A DNA stretch of 64,000 nucleotides from Octopus sinensis. Taxonomy: Eukaryota. The DNA lies in contig NC_043005.1 of NCBI RefSeq assembly GCF_006345805.1, positions 558,001 through 622,000 of the forward strand. The letters are read 5' to 3'. Shown piece after piece: positions 1,802 to 64,000 of the stretch. The notes under the pieces are model-generated. The model was not told the origin of the DNA, did not search any database, and was given only the letters and a program-made list of their open reading frames with translations. Within the stretch, counting starts at the first letter, position 1. Each line of letters starts with the position of its first letter. The translations under genes were made by a program, and so were the position numbers.

Positions 1802-1923
1802 TCACTAGCATAGCTGGCGTAGGGCGGTTAGGTGTGGTCCGCCAGGGTGGCACTTTTAAAGGGGTCTGGATGCGGCAAACGTAGGGGCCACCCGGGCGGC
1901 ACCACATCTAGTCCCGTTAGTGA
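1802..1923. mobile_element. Short GC-rich hairpin element (MITE-like)
   Basis: ggtgtggtccgccagggtggc is an imperfect reverse complement of gccacccgggcggcaccacatc; outer tcacta / tagtga also pair. Confidence 0.5.
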
Positions 1924-2349: not shown

Positions 2350-4915
2350 CCTCCTACACACACAGAGTAAGACTCATGCTCTCAGGAACGACTCATTGCA
2401 AACAAACACAGGTGGAGTCACCTGCTCTACCTCACCAATGCCCTAGTCATGGAACAAGTTGTACTCAGACCAACGAGGGAAAATAACATTTTGGATCTCT
2501 GCTTCACAAACAATATAGACATTATTCATGATGTGAAAGTAACGCCGACATTAGTCTCGGATCACAACATAATAGAGCTTTCTATGTTTGGGCCGAAAGA
2601 AGCCAGAGGCATACAGCCAAAAGGAAGCACCCGAAATCTCTCCAATCGGAACTTCCACAAAGTAGACTGGAAACCGATCCAAAAAGAGATCCGCAGACAA
2701 CTGTCCGAAATGTCTCTCGGCACCAGACGTTGGCATGAAACTAGAATATTTCATGTCTGTTATGCAAGCCATATGCCAGAAATATGTTCCAGAGCACAAG
2801 GCCACAACAAATAGGAACAAGATTCTAAAGGAGAGGAAGATTCTCATGAGACGACGGACGAAGGTTTCAAATCGCCTCAACCAACATGCCAAAAGTAGTG
2901 AAAGGTCCCGCCTAAAAACAACACTGATGTAGATTGGAAAAAGCTTGAAACAATTTTATGTGAGGGATAGAGTAAACAAAGAAGCCTGGGTTAGTAAAAA
3001 CATTAAGTGAAATCCAAAGACCTTCTTTCATTACGCCACAGAAACAGCATTAATACACCGCAAGATAGGATCCCTCTTCCCAAAGGATGGCACCCTCACA
3101 GAAAGCCCAACCAGGATCAGTGAGGTACTGAATGACCAGTTCAAAACTGTCTTTATCACTCCGTTGGGACACAGACAAGTGAATTAACCGGTGGACTTTT
3201 TTTGCCGCCTCACCTATAACCAGCGAGGCAATTACGATGGAATACATCGACATTAGCGAAGAAGATTTACTAACCATAGATGAAGTGGACGCAAACTCAA
3301 CGGATGGTCCTGATGGTTTACCAGCAATCCTCCTCAAATCGTGTAAGCATACCCTGGCAAAACCCCTCCAGATTTTCTTCCAGAGCTTTCTTGCAAATGG
3401 CAGACTGCCAAGCAAGCTGAAGGAGGTAATAATATGCCCAGTCAACAAAGGAAGCAGAGCAGATGCCAAAAACTATTGGCATATCTCTCTGACTTCACAC
3501 ATCAGCAAGGTCATGGAACGGATCGTCAGATGGAACCCAATTGCATACCTTGAAGAAAATGATTTATTGAGTGATACCCAGCATGACTTTCGAACAGGTA
3601 GGAGCTGCCTGACCCAGCTCTTACAACATTATGACTTGGTGTTAAGGCAGTTACTCAACAACTCAAATGTGAACGTAACATACCTTGATTTTGCAAAAGC
3701 TGTTGATTAGGGTATGATATGCCACAAACTGCGATTTCTCGACATAGCTGGAAAACTTGTAGAGTGGTTACATGACTTTCTGAAAGATAGAAGTCAGGAA
3801 GCAGTGGCCAATAGCGCCTCCTCAACGAAAACACAAATAGTGAGTGGTGTTCTACAGGGCACTGTTTTGGAACCCCGGTTTTTCAGAGTGGCCCTCTTAG
3901 ATATGCCCTCAACTGCCCGGATAGCTACCCTTGCTAGCTACGCAGACGATACGAATGTCTCGAAAAAAAATACAGATGCCCAGCAATGTTACCCACCTGC
4001 AGCAGGAGATGCACTCAATTTACAGATGGGCTGAGGATAATAATATGCAGTTAAATGCTGAAAATTTCCAAGCCCTGCGCTACCAGCGTCCAAAACGGAA
4101 TATGGAACTTACTGGGTACACTGTTCCACAGGGAATTTCAATCCCAGAGCCTAAGTCAATGAAGGACCTGGGTATCGACATTTGTCATGATACCGCTTTT
4201 CAAGTGCACATTACCAGGATGGTGACAAAGTGCAGACGACTGACTCGATGGATCCTGAGAATATTCAGAACGAGCGAGAAGGAAACCATGATGGTCCTCT
4301 GGGGGACATTCTTCTCCAGCCGCATGGATTACAGCTTCCAGCTATGGTCACCCAATAGTGTAAAATTAACAGCGGACCTCGTAGCATTCCAGCGAAGCTT
4401 CACAAAGAAGATCGTCTCTTTGCAACAGCTCAGCTACTTGGAAAGGCTGCAAAAGCTAAGACTCTACTCCCTGAAGCTAAGGCGGGAGAGGTGTGCAGTA
4501 ATATATACATCTAGAAGATCCTGGAAGGAATTGTGCCAAATTTTGGCATTGGAAGCTACATCAATGCAAGGAACGGATCGACAATGTACAGTGCCAAATA
4601 TCCCAGCAATGCCATCGCGCTTCAGGACCAGTTACTGCAACAACCTGTGTTTCGGGGGCCCACATCTTGTTTAATATTCTCCAAAAAAACCTGAGGAATC
4701 TGCAATAAGAAGATGTAGGCGTTTTGCAATCAAAGCTGGACGTCTTCCTCTCGAGATTCCCAGATGAACGTACCTCTAGGCATGAGGTGCAAATAAGGGT
4801 AGCTATATCAAATCCATTCTACACCAAGTGGCATATATTAGAGGAGGATCTCAGTAATCAGTGTAGCAAAACAGCGGTGCTCCAACATGGCCACAGCAAT
4901 GAGCTGAAATTATAA
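2350..4915 (+). mobile_element. Decayed CR1/L2-group LINE (endonuclease C-terminus, RT, 3' end)
   Basis: Frameshifted ORFs with [23 protein letters not shown], LDFAKAxD, QGTVL, YADDT; 3' end gcggtgctccaacatggccac...gctgaaa. Confidence 0.9.
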
Positions 4916-7076: not shown

Positions 7077-8225
7077 ATATATATATAGTTTATATTTAGC
7101 TTTCATAACTACTGCTCAAATATGAGATTTAGTTTTAGGCAATCACCAATATAGTTGATTATTTTAAAATTCTCCTACAAAAATAAAATCCAGTCCCATA
7201 AGACGCCCTTCCTGCGATAAATGGTATTTCTCCTTTATTCCTAACATGGTCAATTTCCGAAAAAGAAAAAAAAAAGGGGAGGGGGAAACTATCGTCATAA
7301 CGTCGTAAAAAAAAATCAGTTCATATTTTTAAGGGAATGAATTGCGAAGGTAATGATTTCAAGGGGAGTAACTACGTAATATAGAATTGGAAGGGAGTTA
7401 ACTCTAGCATGAGTTGTTCATAGCACTTTGTAGAATTTTGTCGGGGGAAATGCAAGATGCCTCTCTTCGAAAATCTGGATGCAAATTTCATATCTGGTTT
7501 CAGAATTTGCAATATACGTATTTCCAAATTATATTTAATATGACATGTAGGTATTAAAAGTTGCAAATATATGATAAAAGCTACAACAGTCATTTCCCCT
7601 GTTTTAGAGAAAGCTCTAGACTTTTTTTCCACCTACATTTCGATAGCAATGAAATCTAATGCAAAAAGATACGTGTAGCTGGATACATTCTCCTCCTGGG
7701 GGCACGAAAATACTGCCCGACAATAAAATAACTGATGTCGCTTTGGTAGGACAACCACTTGACAATGGACGCTTGAATACAATCCATTTAGAAGGAATTT
7801 TAAATTTCTCTCTACTTCTTCAGGAATATCTTTGATTGTCGAAGATCACAAAATTTATCAAATGGATTCCCAAGTGACATTTACAAAATCCTATTTAATC
7901 AACCGCAAATATATCATTTCAACTAAAATGTATCGCATTAAATGATGTGTTTTCTGTTTCGAATAGGAAAAAGATACAAACATGAAGAAATGAATGTAAA
8001 ATCTTCCTATCCCCAAAAGACGCAAACTAAAATTTCTTGTGAAGAGAATTTATTGTAGAAATTTGCAACCACATTCGAAGCTGAAGAAATCGATCTGTAA
8101 ACAAGTGTCCCAGACACTAGACAAATAATCAACATTATAACGAGCTGTTTCAGGTAAAGTTTTGATAAATAGAACACAAAACGTATTGTAAGGCAAAATT
8201 AATGTTTTATTACTGATTCATCATA

Positions 8226-21119: not shown

Positions 21120-23433
21120 TAATGAATTAAAAGCAGCACTAGTGTTGTGAACATTATCGACCGCACATACTCAATGGATGTGTTTTGCTTGCTCACTGGT
21201 ACGCTCTGACATAGCGCTGTGGGGACGACTCCCTCTTAACACTGAGTGAAAACCACTGAAAGTCATAGACAGGCGAGACAACTCGTCCCCCGATCGCATT
21301 CAGGAGCGATGGCTGCTGATATTTCGCCATTTCTGTAGTTTATCAATATAACGGACCCGAATTGGACCAGAGACAAGGAATATGAGTGTACAGATGAAAG
21401 AAAGATGCACTCAACACGGCTGGTTGGAGTTGTATGTATTTTATAACATTTACACTCAGCTCTACATCACTTACAATTTGTGATTGTAGAACACGTGCAC
21501 ATCCTGAGATGTTCGGAGACAGAGTAGAGGAATTTTTAAAAGATTTAGAAAACTTCGAGGTGAGATTGTTTAGGCTTCCGTTGGCCTGTCACCTTAGAAA
21601 AAAATGGTGAAAGCAATGTTTTCGTCATAGACGTCAGCGAATCTTTGGACCGTGTCTGGTATGCAGAATCCTCTCGCCTAAGATTTCCACCAGGCTCTCA
21701 TCTCTTGGATCGGTAGTTTTCTATCAGATCACATTAATGTGAGGGACGAAACCGGATATGGACGGGGACGGCTTTGACTTGTTTGGGTGAGTAACCGTAC
21801 CGTTTTAAGTAATTTGACCGTGTGCTGGACCTGATTCTGTGACTGCACACCCGTTAGAGATTGAAGAATTTGGGAGAAGCGAATGAGATGTTGGGAGTTG
21901 ATGATAAGGTATGATGAGGCAAAGACCAAGAGAGAGGAAACAGTAAAATTAAAGAGAGCAGAAGAACTGAGGATGGAGTGTGTGTGTGTAGGGGGGTGAG
22001 TAGATGGAGAGAGAGAGAGAGAGAGAGAAAGTGAGAGAGAGAGCTGTTCAGGAGCTTAGAGATTTCAGAGATAACAGAGTGAATTCGAGAGAGTTAAGTA
22101 AGGAGAAAAGAGGACAAAAGAAACAAAGGAATCGAGTTGTAATCGAGAGAGAGAGAGAGAGAGAAGGATGGCAACGAGCTATTGTAACTAAATTTCTGGT
22201 ATTTCTTTTGTCCAATACTGTGTTGACTCCTCATCTCCCATCCATTTCTATTTATATCTTATAAATAAGATGAATGAATAAACGAATATAATTACCATAG
22301 TGGAGATCTATATAGCTGGACACGTACTTATATACACAGTCGTACAATAAAAGCGAATCATCTCTGAAATAGTATTTGGGCAAAACTTTCGGATCGTCAA
22401 CCTGAAATATGAAAGCAAAGAGTGATATCTTCATAGATAAAACGTGCCAGACAAATGTTTTCTTTTTATGCTTCATTAACCTTGCTGAGGAATTGTTTAT
22501 TAATAATGAAACCTCATGCCAAGTTGCCTAAGAGACTGACTGCGTCTTGCTTTCACGTAGAACGAAATCCTTTATGAATATGTATTTGTGTATTCATTGA
22601 GTTTGCAAGCGTTGAGTGTATGGAATAACGTTTCATGTACCCCAGGATAGATGTGCATATGATATATAACTTACGTATTACAACCCAGAAATATATGTGT
22701 ATGTGCTTATATCATATGTACGAAAATACTGGAGTCAGCTGAAGAGTTCATAGACTGATCAAGATGGTCTCATGGAATGTGACCAAATGAGGTGTATTTT
22801 TCAAGATGTCCTCCTTGCAGTCCACACACTTCTTCCATCGGCGTTGCAGTGCTTGGATCTCATTGGTTGAGAAGCTTTCATCCGACTGGTAAAAATAAAA
22901 TGTCATCAACAGCAGATATGATGTCATCAACGTTGCGATACTGGTTCCGAGGCAAGTGTTTTATCAGATGAAAGTCAGATGGGATCCAAATGATAGAATG
23001 AGGATGGAGAGAGTGATCAATCAGTTCAAAGCCACAATGACGCATAGCAACCATTGAAACCAAAGACTTGTCTTGATGACCACTTTCACCAAACCAAAAT
23101 AATAATAATAATTACTCATTTACGAAGACGACGAACTGGCAGACTCGTTAGCACGTCGGGCGAAATGCTTAGCAGTATTCCGTCCGTATTCATGTTCTGA
23201 GTTCAAATTCTGCCGAGATCGACTTTGCCTTTCATCCTTTCGGGGTCGATAAATTAAGCACCAGTGAAACACTGGGGTCGATATAATCGACTAGTCTCCT
23301 CCCCCAAAATTTCAGACCATGTGTCTATAGTAGAACGGATTATTTTGGGAAGATTGATTTAATTGAAGCTAATGAAACAATTGCAAGCTAAACAATAAAC
23401 GGCGTTTGATAACTTTTTTCTTTGATGTTCTTT

Positions 23434-25266: not shown

Positions 25267-27850
25267 CGCACGCTCGCTTCAGTAAGAAAAAGCATTTACT
25301 AACAGAAAAGCATGTTATTAAAGTAAGTTATCTTTTAAATACCTTTTTAAATCAATGTTGACCTAATGAAGCTCCTTACTCATGTGCATACACCCACACA
25401 CTCAGCGTGAGCGATATAATTTTATAGAGAGTGAGAAAGTTTATCATGAGAAAATGAAAGATGAATTTCGAAATTTTTAAAATTAAGTGAAAAATTTCAA
25501 ATTTGGTATATTGTACTTTTTCACGACGAATCCAAGTTCGTGATTCGTTTATTCCTGAAAGATCTTAGTAAAGTGTTACAGAGGTTTAAAGTTTCATAAT
25601 TTTAATCTAATGGGAAAACAGAATTTGGAAGCTAAGCATTTTTTGTGTGATAAATTGTGTATCATAAAATGAAAGTGAGCATTAGAAGACCAGGTTTTAA
25701 ACAAAATGAAGGCTATGTGTGAGAATTAATAGATATACGAGTAAGAGTGAGTATCAAAGAGCATGGTAAATACAGATAGATTGATGGAGATAGAGACTGG
25801 GAGAATTGTCGATCTAAAAGTCGAGTTATTTCTCATAGAAAATTACATTTTTTAATTATTATTAACGGACAGCATTGTCTTTGGGATGCAGATTTTGAAA
25901 ATGAAATTAATTTTTCTAAAAGATGCAGTGTTTTAGAGCCTTCTAGGGCTAAACACACATACACTTGCATTGTATTTTTTACACATACACACACACATAT
26001 ATATATATGTGTGTGTATAGATATTTCTATATAAGAAGTTTGTAATTTAATGTGTCTCGCTGCAAAGGATAATAGAAAGGAAAGTTCAATAGTCTGCAAG
26101 TGAAGTCAGCGCACGCTTCTCCAAAGACGTGTTTTACTGGCAACAACAAGTCCAATTTAAAAATACTAGGATCATTTGAAGAGTACAGTTCTTTGATTCA
26201 CTCCGACCATTTTGAAGCGGGAGCAACAATGAACAGCATCAATTATACCCAGAGAAAATAGTAATCATCGGAATTCTCTTGATTAGATATGTGCATGGCA
26301 GGGGTTAACCTGACGTTAAACAACACCTCAGGTGTGTTTGATCTGCCAGAGAGATGTAAGAAACGTGCATAGCGAAAACTGCAAGAAACGTACAAAGTGA
26401 AAAATGTAAGAAATGTTTCACGTACGTTATACAATGTAGTCTTAGATTATTCTAAGTAGAATGAATAATTAGAGAGAGAATACTTCGAAGAATGATCGTG
26501 AATCTGTCGCCTCAATGAAGATTTACCTGGGGTTAAACCAACATAATAAGCAACAAAAGAATTACTTACTTTTCGGTTTGCAAAATCATTAGCAGGAATT
26601 CCATCTCGATAAAAGTCCCATTCTTGTAGTCTGAAAAAAGTATATATGCATGTGTATATGTAAATATTATAACAGTATGTTATAAAAATATTTTTGCTAT
26701 TCCTGAAAATTATTCTTCCAAGCACTTGAAAGACTGTTGAAAAGTAGTGGATACCTACCAGGTATAAAACCGAACCTGAATCAAACAATAATAATAATGA
26801 TAATCTTTTCTGCTGAAGGCAGAATGTCTGGAATTTTGGGAGAGGGGACTAAGCGATTACATCGACCCCGGTGTTTCACTGGTACTTAATTTATCGACCC
26901 TGAAAGGTGAAAAGCTAAATTGACTTCGGTGGAATTTCAACTCAGAATGTAAAGACGGACGAAATTCTGCTAAGCATATCACCCGGCATGCTAACGATTC
27001 TGCCAGCTCGCCGCATTAATAAGAAGAAAAGAAGAAGAAGAAGAAGAAGAAGAAGAAGAAGAAGAAGAAGAAGAAGAAGAAGAAGAAGAAGAAGAAGAAG
27101 AAGAAGAAGAAGAAGAAGAAGAAGAAATACAACAAAAGCTATAAAACAAATGAAATCGAAACTAAAACTAGCACAACAACGGACCATGATAAAACGATGG
27201 CAAGAAAAACTAAATGCAAAAGAAATAGATAAAGAAAAATCCCAGGATTGGTTGAGAAGCTCAGGACTCAAAGCAGAGACGGAAGGATTTTTAATTGCAG
27301 CACAAGACCAAAGCCTCCCCACCAGAAATTACCAAAAACATGTAATGAAAAGAAATATGACAAGTAACTGCAGAATATGTGGAGATGGACAAGAAACAAT
27401 AAATCATATTATCTCTGGCTGCCCAGTCCTGGCTAGGAAGGAATATATTCACAGACATGACAGAGTTGGGACCTACATACACTGGAAGCTATGCTAACAT
27501 TATGGAATAACAACAGAAAAAAGATGGTATAGGCACACTCCAGAGAAGGTCACAGAAAACGAGACGAGAAAGCAACCATACTCTGGGATATGCCAATACA
27601 CACAGATAGAGAAATTAAGGCCAATAGGCCAGATATAGTTGTTAGAGATCATGAAGAAAAAATGCTTTCTAATTGATGTATCAATACCAGCAGATGACAG
27701 TGTCTCTAAAAGAAATGGAGAAACTCTCAAAATACAAGGACCTGGAAATAGAGGTAACCCGAATGTGGAATCTAAAAACAGAAACAATTCCTATCATAGT
27801 AGGCGCATTAGGTAATATAAAAAATAAAAATAAAAAAAATAATAATAATA

Positions 27851-29433: not shown

Positions 29434-32400
29434 GCTGTGACAACACATAAAACAATATCATTGATGATGATGGTGGTGATGGTGATGGTGATGATGATAA
29501 TGATGATGGTAATGGTGGTGATAATGATGATAGTGATGGTAATGGTGATGATAATAACAATAATAAGCCGACTACGGCTGCTATAATGGTACGATTATAA
29601 TTGTAACGGCAATGATGGCCGTCTCCCCACGAGCCAATCAAAGCTAAAAAATGATAACATTATCGTAGCACCAAAATGTTTTTTGGAAACTAAAAGGAAA
29701 ACTAAATCAGTATACCAAATCGCTTGTCCTATGGTTAATCTGGAAGCGCGTCCCCCAGGGAAGAGCCAGCCTGGGATCGAAAAGTCATCAACTGGCACAA
29801 ACTCTTCTCCGAATACGGACATGGATGGTCACTTGAACGGGAAATCCCCCAACTCGAGCCCTCCAAGTTCACCACCACAACCACCACAGAAAGAAAAATG
29901 TAAGCGGAACAAATGGACCCGAGAAGAGTATAAAGAAGTAATATACGCTTATTACTATGCATTAGGTAGGCCATCTCAAGAGAGACACACCGCAAACTCT
30001 TACAGTATATGGAGAACACGGAATCAAGACAGTAGGCCCTATTTGGACGAGAACAAATTAGCAAATGTGAGGAGGGATATCTTTAGAAATAACAGACTCA
30101 CAGACAGTGAAATAAGCGCAATCAAGCACGCAACGGAAAATGACATAAATATAAGACACAAAGGAAATGAAGAATCAGATGAACAGTATAGCCCGCCACG
30201 AGGCTTAATTGAAACACTGCCATCTGACCAAAGTACGCAAAGGCCTGAAGATACAAGAAATTCTATTGTACCTGTTAAAGATAGCCAGGAAAACGAAAAA
30301 ACAACAGTAACTGAAGATCTCGCATTTGCTGAAGAACACAGAGAGTCCATGGCAGAAATGAGGCAGAAAATCCTGAATACGCTTGAAGTTGTAAGACATA
30401 CAAGTATGAATGATAGAGAACCGCTTCATAAACTCTCAAATACAAACCAAAATAAAAAACAAATCCAAATTGGCAACTATGTAACAAATGAAATAATACG
30501 AGAATTAAAACCTGATTTTACTGAGTTAAATGAAATTATTTACGCTTCTGCTAGGGCAATTGAAACCAGCTGTATGCCCCCGAAAAAACAAAGAAAACAA
30601 AACCTGGGAAGAAATCAAACCTGGAGAAGTAAAATTGAAAAAGAGATTGAATTTATGAGAGGGGAAATATCAATATTAAATGAACTAATATGTGGAAATG
30701 ATGTAAGATCCAGAACAGGAAGAAAGATGAAGAGAAAATTTGGATCCTCACCAAGAGAAGAACTGATATCAATAAAAGAAACGCTGAAACAAAAAGTCCA
30801 AGCAAAAGCCCAAAGAATACGAAGATTTGAGAAGAGAAACAAGTTTTACAAGCAAAATAAGCTGTTCACATCCAATGCCAAAAAATTCTACAGAGAAATA
30901 GGGAAGGAGAAAGTAACCGTTAAAGACCCCCCTCCCATGGAAGAAGTTCAAAACTTTTGGAAAAGGATTTGGAGTGACAAGAAGACGTACAACATAAATG
31001 CAGACTGGATTATACAAACTGAAGGATCCTACCAAAATTTACAACAAGCATGGGAAGACATCACAATAGCAGACCTAAGAAAAGCACTCACGAAGGCCCA
31101 TAATTGGAAATCCCCCGGTAAAGATAGGGTGCCGAATTTCTGGCTCGCATCGCTCCCGTGCGCACACGGTAAGCTAGTTCAGCTGCTCAATGGAATTATG
31201 AGAGACCCAAAGAAAACACCTGAATGGTTAGCAAGTGGCATTACTTACCTACTCCCAAAGAATAACGAAACCAACCTTCCAAAAAACTATCGGCCTATAA
31301 CCTGTCTATCCACCACGTATAAAATCCTAACATCTATCCTGGCGGAGAAAACATATGCATTCATGGAGAAGAACGATATTGTCCCCATTGAACAAAAAGG
31401 GTGCCGCCGAGGCTCTTACGGATGCAAAGATCAACTGCTAATCAATCGTATGATCCTTGAGAACTGTCACAACAAGCGCAGAAATCTCAGCACCGCATGG
31501 ATTGACTATAAAAAGGCCTTCGACAGTATACCGCATCCATGGATCTTGAGATCGCTGGACATCTTCAAAATTTCCCCTGTGATTTCAAACTTCCTGAAGC
31601 ACAATATGTCGTTGTGGAATACGAATCTCCAATTATACCACTCTAATGGAGTACTTGCCTCAGAAAATATAAACATCAACTGTGGAATTTTTCAAGGTGA
31701 CTCACTTTCACCTTTAATATTCTGCATAGCCCTAATACCCCTAACAAGTGAATTAAACAGAACAGGGTATGGGTATAAAATTGCCAATAAAAAAATAAGC
31801 CATCTATTTTATATGGATGACTTAAAACTTTATGGTAAAGACAATAATGAACTTGAAGGCCTATTGCGCACCGTGAAAGCATTCAGCGATGACATCGGGA
31901 TGGAGTTTGGACTTGAGAAGTGTGCCAAGGCCACTTTCCAGAAAGGGAAAGTGAAGACCACAAATTCAGTCGTGTTAGATGTTGACACAGTCATAAGAGA
32001 GATTGAGCAAGAACAAACATACAAATATTTAGGGATAAATGAAGGCTCTGGTATTCAGCATGCAAGCATGAAAGAGAAAATCAGGAAGGAATGTTATAGG
32101 AGAGTTCGTGCAGTCCTGAAATCTGAACTAAATGCACGTAACAAGGTGTTAGCTATAAATTCCTTAGCAGTTCCAGTTGTTACTTATAGCTAAATTCCTT
32201 AGCAGTTCCAGTTGTTACTTATAGCATATGGAATATGAGTGAAGTAAAGAATATAGATAGAAAAATACGCAAGCTGCTGAGTTGTAATAGGATGCACCAC
32301 CCAAAGGCAGACGTAGATCGCCTTTACCTTCCCAGAGCCCAAGGAGGTCGAGGCCTGATCCAATTTGAACTAGCTTACAAAACAACCACAATTGGACTGG

Positions 32401-32777: not shown

Positions 32778-34991
32778 CAATAATGGTAATAATATAGGGT
32801 TGAGGTAACTCCTCCAGAAGATACAGAAGCAAAAAAAGAAGAGTGTCATTGTTATGAAGTGAATGATATTTCGACATCTCGTTTGTTTTGCACAGGTTCA
32901 AAAAAATAAACTTGTCAATCTACTTCCTTTATTGCCCACAATGGCCTAAGCACAGAGGAGACAAACAAGGACAGACAAATGAGTTTCGAGTCCAGTGCTC
33001 AACTGGTACTTAATTTATCGACCCCGAAAGGATGAAAGGCAAAGTCGACCTCGGCGGAATTTGAACTCAGAACGTAACAGCAGACATAATACCACTAAGC
33101 ATTTCGTCCGGCGTGATAACGTTTCTGCCAGCTCGCCGCTTTTGTTTGAGTTTATCTTGGCTTTATATAGTCTCTGATAAATTTATCTTTTCGGATATAG
33201 ATGGAGCTCTATTGGATGATAAGTGTATCACTTCAGGTCTGGAGGTTGAAATCGAATAAAAGAAATCATTTTAAAAACATAGTCCACAAACTTTACCTCT
33301 CCAAAAGACAAAGGTAAAATTTTCTCAGTCGTAATCAAATAACATCAAGAAAAATTAACTCCGGGTTAGAAGTCTGCTGACCAACCAAGCTGTCCATCTA
33401 CATACATCTTTTTGTGAACCCTAAAGAACAAGGTAAGAAAATTTTTATAAATCTCTTAAATAGAGCTCAAATAATATCAACAAATAAAGGAATTTGCTGA
33501 CCAACTAACCTTTCCGCCTACTGTCTTTTCTGAACTCTAGATAATCAAATTTCTAAGCTTAAATCTTCATGACCTAAAGCTGATATGCTTAAATAAACAC
33601 ACCGAATCACAAAATTTTACATGTTGGACAGAACGCTGCACAATAACTTCTAACTTCATAAAACAAACAAGTTAAGTACAGATAGCAACAACAACAATAA
33701 CTCAACCTACTTACTTAGCTGCAGAATAACTTATAACTTCTCACCTACCTTCATTTTCTTGTGAACCCTAAAAAACAAGCTCAGAAGCTGACACACCTAA
33801 ACAGACACACCTGATTGCAATGTTGTACACATGCCACTGAACTCTAAACAATAACACAACACCAACGTTTATTAATAAAAATCTACTGTAATATTATTGT
33901 ATCAAACCTCGTCATACAACCAGAGCTCCATCTACAGCAGAAAAAAAAACCAAACTTACTGGAGACTATATATGACCCAGAATATCTGAGTCCGCGGAAG
34001 GCTAAAACTTCAAAGTCACTGACAACACTATTCTTGTAATATATATATATATATATATATCACCGTGATCACTGTGACCGACCAGGCTATCAGATGTTGC
34101 TACATATCGCTGGTCACAATGCGCTTCGCATTATTTTAGCCTTCAAATGACGCCACCTCGCTGGCTAAACGAGCAGGCCAATATATATATATATACGTTC
34201 AGCAAAATTTAGATTCAAATGAACATGGTACTTCAGTTAGATGCGCCAGAATTTTGTACGGTGTTATCTATATAAATCCATGGGGTGATTATAATCAAAA
34301 TAAGCAACAAGAATATCTTCAGTAATTTGGTACGATCGTTTCACGCTACTTCATTTTATTAAGCATTGTAAGTATTACAACAGTTTTAAAATGTTGAGCA
34401 ATCATCAGCCATTAATAGAGGTTTTCCATCAATACATATACTTATTTTCATGTTAATTGATAATATTATAAAGCGGGTAGATATACGGACAAAGATGTTG
34501 ATTTGAATGTTAAGAACATTAAGGTCTTAGAATTTATCTTCTGACTGAAGAATATTCTTTAAGTTATATGGAACTGCTAGAAAGTGGGGAGGGATGTTCT
34601 GTTGGATGGAGACAAAAGAGATTTTCTATTTATAGAAGTAGGTAGGGGTGAAATAAATGTCAGAAATTATTCCTAAAGAAAATTAAAGTGGAAGGGGTTA
34701 TATTGTCTTAGAGGCTGTTTACTCCTATTTGGCAATGCGATTTTGTATCAAGAAAACTAGGTCAATGCTAAATGATCACAATGGCCATCCATAAACTAAA
34801 TAGTTACAGAAAATACAGAGATTCCTTTATACTTATACAAATATATACAAATATGCATCCGCTTTAATCTTTAAGATTATACTTGGCTAGTAGGGGTTGA
34901 TTATTTCAATAAGTTGGATTAAAAGAGAATTATAAATCTAATATTTATTAAGATCGTACCAGATTACCGAAGATATTCTTGTTGCTTATTT

Positions 34992-35059
<68 letters not shown>

Positions 35060-36254: not shown

Positions 36255-37904
36255 CGTGCGTTCAGCATCTTCCTTACCCTTTACAAACCAGTTTTATCAT
36301 TCCCTCCGATCCAATGGTCATTGTTTGGTCGACCCAAGCACCAGGATTTATAAGTTTCTTGAATGCGAAACTGCAAAAACATAGATTCAGGAGAAAAAAT
36401 GTATTAATTCACATAATAATACTGTAGAGAGGAATATTTTTAATATATATATATATAATAAAAAACGATTACCTATGTACTAATTAGTTTCACTCGTTAA
36501 TATTTACGTATATGGACATGCAAACATCTGCAAGATCATCAGCATCTGTCGTTAATTTTAAATAAAAAAATGTTCTCTAACCGGTAAATTGACTGCTGTA
36601 GTTTATTAAGTGCAGAGTAATTCCCGATCTCAGCGCGCCAAAGTGAAGGCATTTGAAAGATACACATACATATAATTTGTAGAACTTTATACATGCTGAA
36701 TTGCGGTTGAGCGTTCTGTATCTAGTTCTGGAAATTGTGTTTTATAAAATTTACGGCAGCGAATTCGTGACGAACCCTTTTTCTTTTCACTGTCGTTTTT
36801 TCACTTCATCTTTTTTACAGCGGCCCTCTCGATCTATACCTGTTGTTGTGCTCTTTCCTTCATATCTTCGTTACCAGCTCCTTCACTCTCTCTTTCAGAC
36901 CTTCCTCTTCCTATCTCCCCTCTCCTTTTTCATATCTTCTTTCTTTTTCCGCTTCCCTCTCCCTTCCTTTGTCTCTCTTTACACCTATCTCTCTCCCTCT
37001 CTTTTCCATATCCTTCTCCTTTTCTCATCTCTTTCCCTCATTCTGTCTCTCCCTCCCTTTGTCTCTTTCTACATCTACCTCTCTCTCTCTCTGTTTCATA
37101 ACTCTCACTTTTCCTCTCCTCTCCCTCCATTTCATATCTTCCTCCTTTTCTCACTTCTCTCTCCCTTCTTTTGTCTCCCTCTCCATCTACCTCTTTCCCT
37201 CTCACCTCACCCTCTCCCTCATATACTTCTCTTCTCACTCCGTCTCTCCACATCCTTCATTTTCTCATAAGACAACATAAGACAACACAATATAGTCACA
37301 TGCAATACATATCGCCCACCAGATGGTCCAAACCACATAGGCAAGTTTGAAGATTGCCTCACAAGAATTAAAGAAATCCTCATGAAACTGGAACACCACG
37401 TGAGCATATTTCTTATGAGTGATTTCAACTTCCCCAACGTCAAATGGCTCGAAGGACTCATGCTTTCAAGAATGACTCATTGCAAGCAAGCACAGGTGGA
37501 GTCCCTGCTCAACCTCACTAATGACCTATTCACGGAGCAAGTTGTACTTAGACCAACTAGGGCGAATAACATTTTGGATCTCTGCTTCACAAATAATATG
37601 GACATCGTTCATGGTGTGAAAATGACGCCGACACTAGTTTCGGATCACAACATAATAGAAATGTCTATGTATGGACCAAAAGTAGCTAGAGAAATACAGT
37701 CTTAAGGAAGCACCCAGAATCTCTCCAATCGGAACCAGAAATATGTCCCACAGCATAAGGCCAACACAAAAAGGAACAAGATTCCAAGGAAGAGGAAGAT
37801 CCTCATGAGACGACGGACGAAGGATGCAAATAACCTCAACCAACATTCCAAAAGTGGTGAAAGGTCCCACCTAAAAACAACACTGATGGAGAGTGAAAAA
37901 AGGC

Positions 37905-44700: not shown

Positions 44701-47403
44701 ATAATTGTTGGAGCCCTGGGAACAGTGAGTAAAAATCTCGAGAAGTACGTGGAACAAATAGGGGCTGCAATAAGTGTGGAGACTTGCAGAAAACAGCACT
44801 GCTTGGAACCGCTCCAATACTCCGGAAGGTGCTCGAAAAATAAGAAGTGTTCATTATCATCATTGTTCGACCGTAGTCGAGACAATGGAATTTACCATGC
44901 TACGCCAGACTTCACGGTCCATCATAGCATTACGGAGGTCCTGTTGCTGGATGCCTGTATCCCTGGAGATTACATCAGGGTAGGAGAGTGTGCGCCCTCT
45001 GGTATTGCGAGTAGTTGGCTTCCAGAGGAGAAGAGTAGAAATTACTTCTTTTTCAGCTCTACCACAATGTCCAGCAAACTGGACTCTCCTACCTTTCACA
45101 AGAGATGATACAGGTGGTAGTTTCCCATATATTTGCATTTTGGTTGGATGGCGCTTCCACGAGAGATTTTGAGCTCTCATAAGGAGGCGAGTGTAGGTTC
45201 CATCCAACCGCCTCTCAAGCTTCTTTGATAACGTCCAGGTTTCTGAGCCATATAGTAGAATTGGTTCGACTGTGGCTTTGAAGATTTCAAGTTTGAAGTC
45301 TCTACTTAGATTTGATGACCAGATCTTATGCATGTCATTACAGGCTGACCAGGCCATACCCTTTCTAGTTAGAAAGTCTTTTCCAGATGATGATATGTAT
45401 GACCCAAGATATTTATAATCAGAAACCATATTTAAAGGCGCACTGTTGAGAGTGTGGATGATGCAATCACTGTTGGACAGGCACTTGTTTATGTATTCAG
45501 TTTTGGCCTCATTGAGGTAAAGACCTACACAATTTGAGGCTTGTTCAAGAGATTGCAAAAGAGACTGGGCATTGGAGAGAGAATCACTGATAAGAGCGAT
45601 GTCGTCAGCAAAGTCAGTGTCTGTCAAGTACTCAGCTGGGTGTCTGGAACTTCTTCTTGGTATTATTTCAAAGCCCTTGCCAGAGATGGTATCAAGTGAC
45701 ATACGTAGCACATAATCAACAACAATGATGAAAAGAAATGGGGCGAGTGTGTCTCCCTGCAGTATTCCGGCTTTGATTGAGAAAGATGATGTTTCTCCAT
45801 CAGGGGTTAAGATGGTTGAAGACGTATCTGTGTAGAGGACCTTGATGGCAGAAATAATTTTGTCTGGTATCCCATAGAGCTTAAGGATTTCAAACATCTT
45901 GTACCTATCTACAGAATCGAACGCTTTAGAAAAGTCTACAAATACCATTGCAAGATCGCGATTAAATGCTTTTGATTCTTCAATAAGTCTGCGCAGGCAT
46001 AGTATCTGGCTCAGCGTTGAGCGCCCATGTCTGAATCCATTTTGGTTCTTTCGGAGCAAAGGTTCAACAAAAAGGACAAGACGATTTAGGATCAGTTTGT
46101 TGTACAGTTTTGCAGCAATTGACATTAGAGATATGCCCCTGTAGTTGGTGACGAGGGACAAATCGCCTTTTTTGGGTATTGGAATGATTTGAGATTGGTG
46201 CCAAATCTTTGAAGCGACAAAGGTGGAAAGTGTGTGGTTGCAGAGGTTGAGCAAAAGTGTGTGAAATCTATCATCCTTCCAAATTACAGCTGGGATGTTG
46301 TCGGGACCAAATGCTTTCGAGGCTTTTAGTTGCTTGGTGGCTGCTGTTAGTTCAAATATGGTAAAAGGGGAGGTGTTGATGTCCAGTGTGTCTGATATAG
46401 GCACACTTGGAAGAGTGGGGTTATCAGGGATTTTGGCATTCTTCCCAAGGAGGTTTTTAAAATGGGTTGACCAATTTTCTAAACGCTTCTTAGCTGATCC
46501 CCCTTTAATTCTAATTGGTGACCCAGAATTTTTGCCTGATAGGTCTTTGATGGATTTCCAGGCGAGATGGTGTTTTTTACTAATGTGCTCTTTCGATAGT
46601 TTACTAATTTTGCCATTAATAAATTCGACCTCGGCGTTCAAGTAAGCCTCATCAAGATTCTTCCTGGCAGCTATGAGTTGGATCTTTAGTGACTGGGATG
46701 GAGAACGATGGTAAGCTAGTGATATAGACTTTAGATGGTTTCTGGCTTCGATGACATTTGGGGAATTAGAAGGTTTGCTCTGGCCCCTACTCTTCCTTTT
46801 GGGAAGAGTAGCCAGTGCAACTTCCTCTGTTGATTTGATGAGGCTGCTGTATACTTCCTCAATGTTCTCAGCATCTATTTCAGAAGTAGACAGAGATTGA
46901 AATGTGTTATAGACCTCAATAGTAAATTGTTTGGACATATCGGGGTTAGATAAGACTTCCTCCCAGTCGATCATTTTGATCGGGTGAGGCTTAGTTTTTT
47001 TGGATGAGCGAAGACTAAGCTTAACGGTAGCTGATACAATTCTGTGGTCAGAGCCGACAGAACTAAAGGAAGAGTAGGATCTCGAGTCCTTAACGCTATT
47101 GCGCCATTTCTTTCGAAAGATGAGGTAGTCAATTTGTGCCCTATCACCAAGTGGGGACTCAAAGAGGTGTTACCTTAGTTCACTGGTAGTGAACAGCTGA
47201 CGCTGTAGTACATCTTCAGTGCTAGAAGCTGTGCAAAGACAATAAAATAATAATAATAACAATCCTTTCTACTGGAAGCCCAAGGCCTTAGAGTTGGGAG
47301 AAGGGACTAAGTCGATTACATCGACCCTAGTGCATAACTGGTAATTATTTAATCGAATCCGAAAGGATGAAAGGCAAAGTCGACCCCAGCGAAATTTGAA
47401 CTC

Positions 47404-47455
<52 letters not shown>

Positions 47456-50400
47456 AATAATAATAATAATACCCAAGTGCACAACAGATTGATGATAATT
47501 GGCATCAGCCATATTGTACCACATTTTAGCAAGAGTCCAAACGCCTTCATCGTCTGTTGGAAGAAAGACCTAAAAGAAAGTGGTAAATGTCAATATTTCA
47601 TAAGTAAATATTTGAACATCGAAATGAAATTAACTGGAAGACACAGACATATAGACAACCAGATCAACGCATACGCATAGATATCCAGCATGGTTGCATA
47701 GACATGCAAATCTCATGGGAAGTTGATTTCCTCAAAGAATTGTAACATACATAGGATATAGGGAGAAGTAAGAAGAAAAATAAGCGAAAATGCACATTGG
47801 AACTCAAAAAAAGTAAAGGCTTTTTATGAAAAGTAACGATAGATATATACAATTAGATGAACTGAGGTAGAAATAAAAGTAATGAAAGTCATTATTGTGA
47901 ATTGTTAAAGAGATTCAAAAGCATACCGGTTTCGTAAAATTATTAATCATTGCTTTGAATGCACACCGATCACTGCACGGTGTCAGGTCTACTAGTCCCT
48001 GAGTAAAAAGATGTGTAAGGGAGATAAATAGTTCTGGATTTGGTGCAATTAGGGTAGAAATATATCTTTAATGTGAATGGTATATGGGATGTATGGGGAT
48101 TAGTGGTATTAATTGAAAGGTTAGTAATGTTCTGTATTATGTTATGTATTCATATTGAGTTGTGGAATATATTTATTAATGAAAGTTGGCTCTTTATTCA
48201 TTCTTTGTTGTACTGAGGTATTCTGTGAACATTGATAGAAGGGGAAAATTAGGATTAAGATTCCTAGCACACCTTTCTATGTGTTCCCTAACCTGTATCT
48301 GTCTGTATTGTGTGTGTCGGATTTGTTCTTTGTCTTAGTGACATTCCTGTTTGCCCAATATATTGATTACCGCACCCTAAGCGTGTAATGGCATAGATTA
48401 GGTTTTCCGAAGCACAGGTAAAGTTTGACTTTATCTTAAATATTTCACCTTGTTTAAAGTGGAACTCTGTACCCGCCAAAAGGTGGGGGCATGTGCCACG
48501 GTTAGATCGTCCGCATTTTTTCACGTTTAGTTCCTTTGTTAATAGATATAGTCTTGTGTTGGTTAATATTATTTTTAATGATTTCGGTTGCATTTTGCTC
48601 TTGATAATTTTGTGTGAGCCTAAAATTTTGTTCATTGTTTTATCTCCTGTGAGAATGGATAGATTTTGTATGATGATGTTGAAGGCCTCATTGTTTCTAT
48701 GGTTGTGTGTGAAGAAGTATGGGAGTATTTTAAAGTCTGGTTTGGTATTTCGGTTGACTTCCCTTAATGTTCGTATGTCTATTTCCTTTTCTCGTTTAAT
48801 CCCATCATTTATTAATGATGCTGGGTAATGTCTCTTGATTAGTATTGATCTGAGTTCAAGGAGTCTTCGTTCACGAGTATAGGTGTCCGAAACTATAGTA
48901 CAGATTATTTTCGCTAGATTATAAGTATATTAATTTTTATGTGTTTGGGATGGCATGAGTTGAATAATAGGCATTGTTTAGAATCTGTGGGTTCATAGAA
49001 GATGTCTGTTTCGATATGGTTATTAACTATTTTAATTAGGATGTCAAGAAAAGGAAGTTGTTTATTGCTGTGGTCCATGCTGAATTGTATGTTGCTATTG
49101 ATATCGTTGTGCATTATTTTGAAATCGAGGAGTTTGTCAATGCTATCTTTCCAAAGTATAAAGCAATCATCTAAATAACTCTTCCAGTGATGCCCTGGAT
49201 TTGTAGACTTCGAATCTGCTTTCTCCTTTCTTAATTTCTCAAGACTGGTACGTAGGCAGTGTATTACATATCCCAGTTACCCAATAATTACATGTATAAA
49301 CCTATTATGTCGCACGTTCGGATGACCTCTAATCAACTCAACTCTCGACGTCTAGACTTCTCCCTCTATATCTACATATTGGGCTAGCTTACTTCATCGT
49401 CTGGGGGCGTCCACACAACACCTCCCTCTTTTCAGTTTTTTAAACCCGAATTTATCAATTTTATTTCCTCGGTGAGAATCTGGCATATCTTGTTCTCTTA
49501 GCGTTAATTTCCATCATTTCTGTAGGTTTTCTCTCCCTATCCTTTTTCGAACCAAAAATAGACAATAACGGTCGGTGATCCGTTTGCAGTGTAAACTTCT
49601 TCCCATGTAAGAATTTATGGAAATTTATTACTGCGAAGATTAATGATAACGCCTCTTTTTCAATCTGGCTGTAGTTTCCTTCTGCTGGTAATAGAACTCT
49701 CGATGCATGTGCAATAGCTTTGATTTTACCATCATTAAATTTATGCAATATCACAGCTCCTACACCATATTCATAGGCATCCGATGCCACAATTATTTTC
49801 AGATTTGGGTCGAAATCAGTTAATGATAACTCTGATGTTAACCGCTTTTTAATTCCTCGAATGATTTCTGACATTCGTTTGTCCAACTCCATTTCGAGTC
49901 CTTCTTTAGCAACTTATTCAACGGAACTCTTAGCTCATACATTTTAGGTATGCACAACTGGTAATAACTTACCAAACCTAAAAATGATTGTAGTGTTGTT
50001 TTGTTATTGGGAGCAGGCATTTTTTTATCGCGTCGATCCTAGAAGGGTCCGGTTTTCGCCCGTTTTCATCGATCACCTGTCATAAGTACTTTATTTTTAT
50101 CAAGAAAAATTCCCATTTATCCTCCCTTACTTTGAACCCGTAATCACACATTCGTTTGGAAACCTCTTCTATATATTCAATATGTTGGTCCCTTGATTCA
50201 CTTTTGATCAATATGTCATCCAAGCATGGGACCGCGAACTCACAATCTGCTAGCATAGTATCCATCACTCACTGAAACATTGCTGGTGCGACCTTTACCC
50301 CAAATGGCAGTCTTTTGAGACGGTACAGACCTTTATGAGTATTGATTGTTAATACTTCAGCACGTTCTTCATCTACCAGTAATTGGAGGTAGGCCTCTGA

Positions 50401-53400
50401 CAAATCCAGCTTGGAAAAAATTTTCCCACCATTGCACTTAGCAAATATTTCTTCTGGGTTTGGAAGCGGATAATTGTAATTTATTAAACAATCATTAAGG
50501 CCAGTTGAGAAGTCCGCACATACTCTTACTCGTTCTTCTTTTTTATATATAGAGTAGGAGCCGCCCACTCAGAGTAGTCTACTTTTTCAATCATTTCCAT
50601 GTCTTCCAATCTTTTTAATTCCTTCTCAACTTGATTTAACGCCGCAAAAGGTTCATTCCTTTTCGGTTTGAACATCGGCACCGCATTTTCTTTCAACTCA
50701 AAAACATTACTTTAATTTTTTTACACGTACCGAGCTCTTTCGAAAAAATATCAGGGTACATCTTTTTCAATTTTAATTTCATTTTTTCCGATGCTTTCTC
50801 TGACACAGACTGTGATGCCTTCACCTTGTTACATGATGTATTTAGTGATAGATCCTACAGGTCGAATCCATCCTTCCATTAAATCTGTCCCGAACAGATT
50901 CATTGTATTCTTAGTTTACACTTCCGCGTCCTATTTTTAAGTTTTATTTCTGGTGAAATTTCGCTCAAGAATTGAACTCGTTCCGCTGACACACCGTAGA
51001 GTATCCTAGTAGTTTTTTTATACAACGGTCTGCCTATCTTACTCCATGTTGCCGTATTTATTATCGATGCGTCTGAACCGGTATCTAATTGCATTTTGGT
51101 CTGAAACCCATTTATTTCTACCAACACAAATTTTCGGTTTTGTCTGGTATAATTTGCTTTTGTTGAATAGACTTTCTTCTGTTTTACCATTTTCTTTGAC
51201 CGGCATTTCGTCTGTATATGTCCAATTTTACCACACTTAAAATAGGTTTTATCTTTTAAGGGGCAATCTTTCCTCAAATGGCGATCTCCGCAATCATACC
51301 ACCGTTTTGAATTAAAATTTTTCCTTCTTTCTGTACTTTCTTTACACATTTGTACATTATTATTCCTGTCTTCTATCTTTCTTGTATCATCTCGAAGGTT
51401 TATTATTTGTTGGCATTCCTCAACCACTTTCTGCAAAGTGAGTTTCACATCTTGATTCAACTGTGTGGTTACTCTTCTCAGTCCCAAATCACTATGTCAG
51501 TTCTATTATGTTTATTGAGGTTTTCACTGGGATATCCCACCAGTGTTCCTTTTTATTATGAGTGGCTATGGCTTCTACCATACTGTGTGTTCTTATTTAT
51601 TTGACCTCAGAATTATCCTTTCGAGTGATCTCCTTATGCAGTGTCCTGGCTGCAACATTATGTCTCATCGGTACATAATACCATGATGACATTTTCGGAC
51701 AACTGCTTATGAAGAGAAGAGAATAGGAAACTGTTAATGAATCATTGTTACGAAAGTATCAAAAGTATCTCAGGCAGCCAAGAACCCTGATGACAAAGTA
51801 AAACTACAAAATGACGTGTGTGCAATATAAAAATGGGTTGATGAAAATAACATGCAGTTCAATGCTGATAAGTTTCAAGAACTCCACCATCGGCCCACAA
51901 ACAGACAACTATAGAAATACATATGACTAGAGGCTAGAGTAATCCCAGAATTAGAATTGGGGTGTGACCTGGGAATGCACATGAGTAGTGATGCAACATT
52001 CCATGTGTATATTACCAGGATGGCAAAACTGTGCAGGCGAGTAACTGGACGGGTCCTTAGATCATTCAAAACCACAAATGAAGATACCTAGCTACTCCTA
52101 TGGAGGACATTTGTCCTCAGTCTTCTGGATTACTGCCCCCCACTGTGGGCACCGCAGAGCATAATATATTAGTGACGGAACTTGAAGCAATCCAGCACCA
52201 CTACACAAAGAACATTGACTCGTGAAACAGATGAGCTGCTACTGGGAAAGGCTACAAGAAGGGAAACTGGAGAGAAGGCGAGGAAGGTATGCAGTGATAT
52301 GGAAGATCCTGGAAGGTCTAGCTTCCAACTATTAAATACTATACCTATTTCTTTACTACCCACAAGGGGCTAAAGACAGAGAGGACAAACAAGGAGAGAC
52401 AAACGGATTAAGTCGATTATATCGACTTCAGTGCGTAACTGGTACTTAATTTATCGACCGCGAAAGGATGAAAGGCAAAGTCAACATCGGCTGAATTTGA
52501 ACTCAGGACGTAACGGCAGACGAAATACCGCTAAGCATTTCGCCCGGCGTGCTAACGGTTCTGCCAGCTCGCCGCCTTATCTATTAAATACTATACCAAC
52601 CACCGAAATAGACGGCATTGCTTAGTACCAAAGATACCGTTTTCTTCATCTCAGATAAGGACTCAGTATTGCAACAGCTTAGGCTGTTTAACACCTTCCC
52701 AAGGAACCTTAGAGATCTGCAAGGGTTAGATGGGAAAACGTTCAGAAAGCACCTGAACAAATTTCTATCTGAACCCCCAGATGAGCCCACATGGTGACAG
52801 GATGCACAAAGAAGAGCAGCTTCGTCTAACTCGCTTCTTCACCAAAAATAGTACCAAAAGGAGACCCCAAAACATTGAATGGCGGTGCTCCAGCATGGTT
52901 CCAGCTTCTGGCTGAAACCAGTAAAAGAATAAAAGTGATACAGAGAATATTAATGTACAGTATTGAGAGTGACACTGTCGTTTGACGTTTAAAGATGTTT
53001 CATAGCATTAGCTAATATGTAGGTGAGGATTAAGACTGCTGAGAGCAACAAATATTTAGTGAATAAACACTTAAGCTTTAATCCATTCAATGAGGGGATG
53101 GTAGCACAAGCTTACATTGTTTCAACAGATCTACCGAAATAGTGATAAATATGGAAAATCTCTGCTCTGACAGTTAGGTATCAACTGGCTTGTTGAGGTT
53201 GTTGAGACTGAGAATTTTAAACAAAACCGAAAGACTCTCAAACTAAAATATACACAAAAGCAATTGTTAAACAAAACTAATAAAATTATTCTAGAAACAC
53301 TTACAGGATTTTCTTGTCTTTTGTCTTGCTGCAGTTGTATTGCAATTGGTGTCAAATCGTCGTTTGAATTCAGCATAAATAATGCAATGGGAGCACACAT

Positions 53401-59037: not shown

Positions 59038-59373
59038 TAAAATAAATATAAGAGAATGGTCACTATGTGGCTCATTCTAGCACTAGAAAATCCAAAAGGT
59101 TTCAACCACAAAAATACATGTTTCCCATGAAAGTCAGTACGATTGTTAGCTCGTACTGACTTTCATGGGAAACATGTATTTTTGTGGTTGAAACCTTTTG
59201 GATTTTCTAGTGCTAGAATGAGCCACATAGTGACCATTCTCTTATATTTATTTTTGTGTAAAATATTATAATATATTATAAAATATTATAATAATCCAGG
59301 TTTCTCGAAGCACTGGGCCACTTCGTGTTGAATAGATATACTATTAAATTAGTATCTAATTCTCTCACCCTTA

Positions 59374-63130: not shown

Positions 63131-64000
63131 GAAATAGGTTTCAAAGAGAAAAGAAACTACACTTTGTATAAATATGTAAAAACTAAAAATAAAAGAGAAA
63201 ATGCACATTGTATATGAAAAAATATAGGCTTTTTATGAACAGCAATGATAAATATATACAATTAAATGACCTGAGGTAGAATTAAGAGGTATAAAAGTCA
63301 TTATTTTGTTAAAGAGATTCAATGTCATACCGGTATTGTCAAAAGCTGTTCACTGTCTTTGAATGAGCACCGATTTCCAAACGGTGTCGGGTCTACTCTT
63401 TGTCGGAGTGACATTCCTGTTTGCCCATCAGTACCCGCCAAAAGGTGGGGGCATGTGCCACAGTTAGGCCACCCGTATTTTTCACTTTTGGTTCCTTTGT
63501 TAATAGATATAGTCTTGTGTTGGTTAATATTATTTTTAATGATTTCGGTTGCATTTTGCTCTTGATAATTTTGTGTGAGCCTAAAATTTTGTTCATTGTT
63601 TTATCTCCTGTGAGAATGGATAGATTTTGTATGATGATGTTGAAGGCCTCATTGTTTCTATGGTTGTGTGTGAAGAAGTATGGGAGTATTTTAAAGTCTG
63701 GTTTGGTATTTCGGTTGACTTCCCTTAATGTTCGTATGTCTATTTCCTTTTCTCGTTTAATCCCATCATTTATTAATGATGCTGGGTAATGTCTCTTGAT
63801 TAGTATTGATCTGAGTTCAAGGAGTCTTCGTTCACGAGTATAGGTGTCCGAAACTATAGTACAGATTATTTTCGCTAGATTATAAGTATATTAATTTTTA
63901 TGTGTTTGGGATGGCATGAGTTGAATAATAGGCATTGTTTAGAATCTGTGGGTTCATAGAAGATGTCTGTTTCGATATGGTTATTAACTATTTTAATTAG
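63130..64000 (-). mobile_element. Penelope-like element, same family as 47700-49250, running out of the window
   Basis: 63491-64000 is identical to 48530-49039; the pseudo-LTR portion is diverged. Confidence 0.9.

Follow-up and report, generated by a model that had tools for sequence, protein, structure and literature searches.

The window analysed here, a 64,000-nucleotide (nt) stretch of Octopus sinensis DNA (NCBI RefSeq assembly GCF_006345805.1, contig NC_043005.1, positions 558,001 to 622,000 of the forward strand), contains a lipoxygenase gene on its minus strand, and one intron of this gene carries a hammerhead-like motif, termed m1. Read from its sequence, m1 is most probably the hammerhead ribozyme (HHR) of a Penelope-like element (PLE), carried into the intron as a passenger by a truncated or non-autonomous retroelement. 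This reading is carried by the motif itself, its recurrence, the presence or absence of the surrounding block at related loci, a (TA)n context and a link to PLEs. By extension, the block around m1 would itself be a PLE-derived insertion and the activity of m1 would be low; control of the lipoxygenase gene or of its splicing by m1 is unsupported. PLEs are a known and common kind of element, and m1 most likely adds an octopus case; a literature search found no description of hammerheads in octopus genomes.

Structure of the intronic motif

36471..36549, minus strand: hammerhead motif m1 (pattern scan, sequence reading and folding)

On the minus strand, which is the sense strand of the gene, m1 reads cagAUG-CUGAUGA-U-CUUG...CGAG-U-GAA-ACUAAUUAGU-A-CAUagg. 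A first-pass annotation of this DNA had reported a hammerhead-like string at this place, and the string, its 10-nt palindromic helix III and a predicted cleavage between 36478 (A17) and 36477 are all confirmed. Helix I consists of 3 bp (36545-36543 with 36477-36475) and leads into the core CUGAUGA (36542-36536) and a U (36535). Helix II pairs 36534-36531 with 36496-36493 (4 bp) around a 34-nt foldable extension (36530-36497), after which a U (36492) and GAA (36491-36489) precede helix III, the perfect palindrome ACUAAUUAGU at 36488-36479. The core of a type I hammerhead is complete, comprising C3 U4 G5 A6 N7 G8 A9, G12 A13 A14, an A15.1-U16.1 pair (36488 and 36479) and an H17 that is not G. 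Three helices surround it, with helix I open; helices I and III are weak. The Watson-Crick pair at 10.1-11.1, usually G-C, is absent: U 36535, directly after A9, faces U 36492, directly before G12, and the two can be read as a bulge or as a U.U pair.

The inner part of helix II, shown by the first-pass annotation as '...', is not an open loop; it folds as an extension of the helix (-9.7 kcal/mol, z -1.9). Helix III forms 3 bp with an AAUU loop in the monomer and 10 bp in a dimer, the palindromic 15.2-16.2 and loop 3 being of the kind that allows PLE-type hammerheads to dimerise. A second copy near m1 with which such a dimer could form was not found, as ACTAATTAGT occurs only once in the 64-kb window (exact search).

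Recurrence of the architecture

34327..34414, minus strand: hammerhead motif m2 (relaxed scan, palindrome descriptor and folding)
Octopus bimaculoides locus L006, minus strand, ~22200-22330, position 22319: third Octopus instance, antisense, in the intron after exon f (descriptor scan)

A second motif, m2, lies 2.1 kb downstream of m1 on the same strand in the next intron, and the two bracket a lipoxygenase exon, exon f. It reads UGG-CUGAUGA-U-UGCU...AGCG-U-GAA-ACGAUCGU-A-CCA, with helix I at 34411-34409 and 34330-34328, the core at 34408-34402, GAA at 34342-34340, the 8-nt helix III palindrome ACGAUCGU at 34339-34332 and A17 at 34331. In both motifs a U stands on either side of a long helix II, the triplet is GUA, helix I has 3 bp, and helix III is a perfect palindrome that starts with AC and ends with GU. 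The palindromes are not complementary to each other, and the sequence blocks that carry the two motifs share no homology beyond that of shuffled sequence (score 19 against a shuffle mean of 21). The two motifs arose independently in the sequence and represent one structural family.

The same architecture, CUGAnGA-U-[helix II]-U-GAA-AC..palindrome..GU-H-[3-bp helix I], was seen at window positions 36542 (m1) and 34408 (m2), at 22319 on the minus strand of L006, and at 7487 on the plus strand of an Argonauta hians locus (L007), where an inverted copy of the motif also occurs at 1205 on the minus strand. The helix sequences differ among all instances. None departs from the U/U pair or from C15.2-G16.2, neither of which the search descriptor demanded. 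The 3-bp helix I and the U/U in place of the 10.1-11.1 pair are common to all four instances; the short stem I, in which the first-pass annotation had seen a sign that the motif may be dead, is therefore a shared trait.

The third Octopus instance, GAC-CUGACGA-U-UAGCUG...UAGUUA-U-GAA-ACACGUGU-A-GUC, lies downstream of a reverse-transcriptase-like fragment and is followed by an assembly gap. In each of the three Octopus motifs the helix II segment, folded alone, forms an extended hairpin, with lengths of 44, 59 and 89 nt (z -1.9, -1.8 and -4.4), the last of these being that of L006. A link to PLEs comes from the Argonauta motif (7487-7530), UCU-CUGAUGA-U-ACAAA-ACAA-UUUGU-U-GAA-ACUAGU-U-AGA, which belongs to a PLE whose 3' end, ~70 nt away, abuts a (TA)n tract. 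The reverse transcriptase-endonuclease (RT-EN) open reading frame (ORF) of this element ends at 6116, and a 2.2-kb inverted truncated copy lies at 1091-3296. The interpretation given by the first-pass annotation is, taken as a whole, partly supported. Its assignment of m1 to the kind of hammerhead known from PLEs, with a palindromic helix III, is backed by three further instances, one of them near a PLE 3' end. The U.U base of helix II is common to octopod Penelope-type hammerheads, and in Octopus helix II extensions of 44-89 nt are tolerated.

The window also contains a PLE of its own:

47924..49276, minus strand: PLE fragment with an ORF at 49276-48197 (C-terminal part of the RT and GIY-YIG endonuclease)

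The ORF of this fragment shows the LIY...YIG endonuclease motif. It gave no Pfam match even at E<=10, and its identity is settled by its homologues, which carry RVT_1, DUF8422, HTH_animal and GIY-YIG domains. In the PLE closest to it (L009), an intact hammerhead with the helix III ACCGGU lies 270 nt past the ORF. By-eye comparison with this hammerhead places a decayed counterpart ~250 nt downstream of the window ORF, with AUGAUUA at 47950-47944, GAA at 47933-47931, ACCGGU at 47930-47925 and A at 47924. A CTGACA at ~47986 had been considered as its core and was rejected, given that the L009 comparison puts the decayed core at 47950-47944. A second copy of the PLE ORF fragment (RT C-terminus and GIY-YIG) is found at 63396-64000 on the minus strand.

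Chance expectation, covariance models and folding

The simplest alternative is that m1 arose by chance in an AT-rich intron, where CUGAUGA, GAAA and short complementary flanks would have come together without any ribozyme ancestry. This explanation was initially favoured by Rfam, folding and descriptor counts, and was rejected after m2 and the two further octopod instances, one of them within a PLE, had been found; it is now considered very unlikely. A descriptor modelled on the features named by the first-pass annotation gave 1 match in 300 dinucleotide shuffles of the window and 5 matches in 40 Mb of second-order Markov sequence (~0.016 per window), and would be expected several hundred times in a genome of ~2.7 Gb (an assumed size). 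A stricter descriptor, which additionally required helix III to be a perfect palindrome of 8-14 nt, matched the window twice (m1 and m2, both on the sense strand) and none of 4849 dinucleotide shuffles. Moreover, the 6481 structure-only scaffolds in the real window lead to an expectation of ~0.002 matches with the true core. By these counts m1 exceeds chance expectation, and the recurrence of its unusual details 2.1 kb away on the same strand, the two invariant features that no descriptor required, and the fact that the orthologous O. bimaculoides intron lacks the m1-bearing block with its terminal (TA)n tract all speak against coincidence. In favour of chance, helix I is just 3 bp long and the G10.1-C11.1 pair is missing.

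Two further points had appeared to favour chance. The Rfam hammerhead models, an Infernal-type check that the first-pass annotation had proposed, found nothing in the window at the gathering score, and a threshold relaxed to E<=10 brought up no hammerhead either, be it in 36300-36750 or across the entire window. Additionally, the 91-nt m1 region folds no better than shuffled sequence (z = +0.23), and the hammerhead pairing, which has +3.4 kcal/mol on its own, makes up a fraction of only 2e-4 of the predicted ensemble. Both tests fail their control, however: Rfam also misses the PLE-resident Argonauta hammerhead at E<=10 in 251 nt, and the minimum free energy (MFE) fold of that hammerhead is likewise not the hammerhead. 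The Rfam search is therefore blind to motifs of this kind, and neither its negative result nor that of the MFE and ensemble calculations was retained as evidence on m1. Since the Rfam models miss these motifs entirely, genome annotations would under-count them.

The blocks that carry the motifs

36443..36750, minus strand: Block 1, 308 nt, with m1 near its 3' end; absent from O. bimaculoides L006, present in L001, L002, L004 and L005
34196..34497, minus strand: Block 2, a 302-nt insertion carrying m2 (presence/absence against paralogue L004)
34824..34994, plus strand: degenerate inverted copy of the m2 element, core decayed to UUGAUUA

The window was compared with four paralogous loci, L001 and L002 of O. 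vulgaris and L004 and L005 of O. sinensis, all members of a tandem lipoxygenase array and all collinear with it at 96-97% identity. The O. bimaculoides orthologue is locus L006, which was reached via XP_052827065.1. Its intron aligns to window positions 38147-36751 (78-84% identity) and 36442-36371 (96%), whereas the m1-bearing 308 nt in between (36750-36443) have no counterpart although both flanks align. At this position L006 has 1.66 kb of unrelated low-complexity sequence and no assembly gap. Another O. bimaculoides locus, L003, was discarded as an informative comparison: it is a compact, distant lipoxygenase paralogue whose alignment is neither significant nor collinear (E = 2.7), and its intron has CTGATGATC, with the sole GAAA there ~280 nt downstream.

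PLEs are known to be biased towards microsatellites in their insertion, which for Naiad PLEs means (TA)n, a tract that element diagrams also mark as the preferred target, and often have an adjacent inverted, 5'-truncated copy (PMC8557442). Block 1 fits the first of these habits. A (TA)n tract makes up its 3'-terminal 17 nt (36459-36443) and begins 15-28 nt from the end of m1, so that the hammerhead is followed by a short tail and a (TA)n microsatellite, the same layout as in L007. Presence/absence between related loci, as expected of an insertion, is seen for Block 1 against L006 and for Block 2 against L004. In L004, Block 2 is missing and the empty site is clean, with CAAATCAA directly followed by (TA)n; judged by this comparison, m2 demonstrably rides on a mobile element. 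No match to m2 was found in O. bimaculoides L006. The inverted copy lies ~600 nt from the m2 element, forming an inverted pair as described for PLE insertions. Its 3' tail, ATTACCGAAGATATTCTTGTTGCTTATTTGGA, is identical to the m2 tail, and the copy abuts a (TA)n tract at 34995-35055. The end of m2 is 131 nt from the end of Block 2, which looks compound.

If m1 is of PLE origin, a ~300-nt 5'-truncated PLE copy or a short non-autonomous derivative would have inserted at (TA)n, in sense orientation, just upstream of a conserved block of 3' splice signals. The insertion would have preceded the tandem duplication of the lipoxygenase genes in O. vulgaris and O. sinensis, and would have taken place later than the O. 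bimaculoides lineage or separately from it. Such an HHR, placed near the 3' end of the pseudo-long terminal repeat (pseudo-LTR) of the parent element, is thought to trim long, tandem or read-through transcripts, and the short palindromic helix III would let two neighbouring copies pair as an active dimer.

Several points weigh against this origin. Block 1 resembles no PLE or other sequence in ~350 kb of octopod and PLE-bearing DNA, where its matches are confined to its own paralogous copies, and its membership of a repeat family is for this reason presumptive. It contains no RT/EN coding remnant, the only listed sense-strand ORF being 51 amino acids long. An ORF with RT and GIY-YIG between pseudo-LTRs, as in a complete PLE, is lacking in the 308 nt, and Block 1 can thus only be a 5'-truncated or non-autonomous PLE copy. 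The comparison with O. bimaculoides lacks an outgroup, and the difference may reflect a loss in that species and not an insertion in the lineage of the window. The further instances were found with a descriptor derived from m1, which partly builds the covariation of the helices into the result. The G10.1-C11.1 pair, reported as highly conserved in PLE minimal hammerheads, is missing from m1, and helix II has 44-89 nt in Octopus against a compact 16 nt in the Argonauta PLE copy. As for the passenger role, appreciable cleavage of a monomer is conceivable, given that an axolotl variant with a U.U mismatch cleaves to 22% in 1 h as a monomer (PMC7229834).

Alternatively, Block 1 may be the solo monomer of a non-LTR retrozyme, that is, a ~300-nt unit derived from circular RNA and equipped with a type I hammerhead, and not a truncated autonomous PLE. 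The sizes of the two blocks (308 and 302 nt) and their low GC content fit the metazoan retrozyme monomers of ~300 bp and <45% GC (PMC7229834), neither block has a coding remnant, and retrozymes have been proposed to derive from the pseudo-LTRs of PLEs (bioRxiv 10.64898/2026.07.22.740005). Retrozymes are, however, defined by tandem arrays of ~150-450-nt units, each with a type I hammerhead, and both blocks are single units. Further points against it are the different hammerhead offsets in Blocks 1 and 2, the lack of shared sequence between the blocks and the compound look of Block 2. This alternative is unlikely, and it overlaps with the PLE origin preferred here, which already admits a non-autonomous derivative.

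Comparison with known hammerheads

The closest published relatives of m1 are the minimal type I hammerheads of PLEs, which reside in pseudo-LTRs and appear to act as dimers, with poor cleavage in vitro; their helix I is short, helix II is enlarged, helix III is palindromic, and A9 is followed by an extra nucleotide (Cervera and de la Pena 2014, PMC4209133). With these m1 has in common the full catalytic core, the type I topology open at helix I, the short helix I, the enlarged helix II and the palindromic 15.2-16.2/helix III that allows dimers, and the U after A9 may correspond to their extra nucleotide if it is read as a bulge; the position near the 3' end of the element and the many diverged copies are further points of likeness. 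It departs from them in that U faces U on both sides of helix II in place of the G10.1-C11.1 pair and in that neither an RT/EN ORF nor a recognisable pseudo-LTR is joined to it, and the three Octopus instances differ by the extension of helix II to 44-89 nt. The Argonauta L007 hammerhead matches m1 element by element (CUGAUGA-U-helix II-U-GAA-AC..GU-H-3 bp helix I, then tail and (TA)n), but has a compact helix II (5 bp and a tetraloop), a 6-nt palindrome and U as H17, and resides physically within a PLE that has an ORF and an inverted truncated copy.

The axolotl HHR_Amex2 of non-LTR retrozymes likewise has a U.U mismatch where helix II begins; it is self-cleaving, and its monomer reaches 22% in one hour, its dimer much more (Cervera and de la Pena 2020, PMC7229834). 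Like HHR_Amex2, m1 has a weak helix III with a palindromic loop and a low-GC carrier unit of ~300-350 nt, and its sequence would predict the better cleavage as a dimer that is known for HHR_Amex2. The axolotl ribozyme occurs in tandem arrays with some loop 1-loop 2 contacts, whereas m1 stands alone, and its 3-bp helix I is open and has no loop 1.

The position of m1 further recalls the amniote intronic hammerheads HH9 and HH10 (RF02275, RF02277), which are likewise type I and lie on the sense strand in introns of protein-coding genes. HH9 and HH10 are reportedly conserved across amniotes, according to a paper of 2010. Unlike them, m1 is confined to a lineage, changes at the pace of its flanks and is matched by no Rfam model.

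Relation to the lipoxygenase gene

36277..36370, minus strand: lipoxygenase exon f (exon start 36370)
36371..36442, minus strand: last 72 nt of the m1 intron, with polypyrimidine tract, likely branch point and AG (alignment with O. bimaculoides)

Twelve exons of the host gene lie in the window, between 58396 and 11311, and its homologues are annotated octopus lipoxygenases with PF00305. The intron that carries m1 ends with AG at 36372-36371, directly before exon f, and the predicted cut would leave 107 nt of intron before the 3' splice site. The last 72 nt (36442-36371) are 96% identical to O. bimaculoides, compared with 78-84% in the remaining intron, a contrast that probably marks the functional branch-point and polypyrimidine region. 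A single yUnAy-like site can be read in this block at about -34 and is, on this reading, the putative branch point. The first-pass annotation had placed m1 near the branch-point region; the motif in fact lies upstream of the conserved block, ~74 nt upstream of the yUnAy-like site.

The same annotation had suggested that m1, if active, could tune the splicing or expression of the lipoxygenase. According to this proposal, m1 would be a co-opted intronic ribozyme that cleaves itself in the pre-mRNA, perhaps together with m2. Its core is intact, in sense orientation and present in all five paralogous copies (the window, L001, L002, L004 and L005), two same-strand motifs flank exon f, and single substitutions in helix II, a G to A in m1 of L004 that turns a U.G into a U-A pair and a C to U in m2 of L001 and L002, preserve the pairing. 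The surrounding intron is 97-99% identical among the copies, and retention of m1 in all of them is for this reason uninformative about constraint. Over the five copies, the 72-nt motif has 2 variable sites, namely the G to A of L004 and a position within the helix II extension, and the other 279 nt have 12. There is no detectable host constraint on m1, which changes no more slowly than its flanks.

Conservation in other octopus loci, which the first-pass annotation had named as a check, is thus divided: m1 recurs in the four paralogous loci and is absent from O. bimaculoides L006, and at that distance the core is not conserved between orthologous introns, an outcome that the annotation itself had listed as counting against an active ribozyme. 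The missing m1 in the O. bimaculoides orthologue, the absence of m2 from L004 and of any match to it in L006, the lack of a cis dimer partner, with non-complementary palindromes in m1 and m2, the poor cleavage of PLE minimal hammerheads in vitro even as dimers (PMC4209133) and the location of the m1 cut site outside the conserved 3' splice-signal block all argue against a regulatory device, and co-option is most improbable.

As a PLE-derived passenger, m1 would be transcribed with the intron in the lipoxygenase pre-mRNA, with no identical partner nearby. A solitary motif whose helices I and III have 3 bp each as a monomer would be expected to cleave itself little, if at all, and to have no designed effect on splicing. 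A very improbable scenario is that both m1 and m2 are active in vivo, perhaps with protein help or as trans-dimers at the transcription site of the tandem array. If true, cuts after 36478 and 34331 would free an RNA of ~2.15 kb that includes exon f and has 5'-OH and 2',3'-cyclic-phosphate ends. Ligation of these ends might yield a circle, or the cuts might simply abort a fraction of the transcripts. A lipoxygenase family that expanded recently would then be under a brake of transposon origin. More generally, the case advises caution, as an intact ribozyme core on the sense strand near a splice site may betray the insertion of a retroelement instead of marking a regulator specific to the gene. 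Hammerhead-bearing insertions appear to persist in sense orientation in the introns of an expanding gene family, in contrast to vertebrate retrozymes, PLE derivatives from which introns are reportedly free (bioRxiv 10.64898/2026.07.22.740005).

Compared with the O. vulgaris copies, exon f itself has changes in 5 of its 94 nt and in 4 of its 31 amino acids, with a difference of ~2% in the adjacent intron. An in-frame stop interrupts exon f in the O. sinensis copy L005 (TIG*EG). This suggests relaxed or diversifying evolution, with some pseudogenes, in the tandem lipoxygenase array.

Other features of the window

The introns of the window are several-fold longer than in the O. bimaculoides orthologue. 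Long retroelement ORFs were found within the lipoxygenase introns at 29683-32193 (plus strand), 44860-46974 (minus), 49400-51496 (minus) and 37382-37705 (plus). Read by eye, two of these resemble non-LTR reverse transcriptases, one the pol of an LTR retrotransposon and one a fragment of the endonuclease domain of a long interspersed nuclear element, which is located in the same intron as m1. A weak SNORA15-like Rfam match at 25968-26098 on the minus strand (32.6 bits against a gathering score of 47, E = 0.044), in an intron beside microsatellite sequence, is probably due to chance. Finally, a near-perfect hairpin of 178 nt at 59058-59235, matched on both strands by the Rfam model MIR2863 (84.6 bits, gathering score 94), looks like an inverted repeat of the miniature inverted-repeat transposable element type rather than a microRNA gene.

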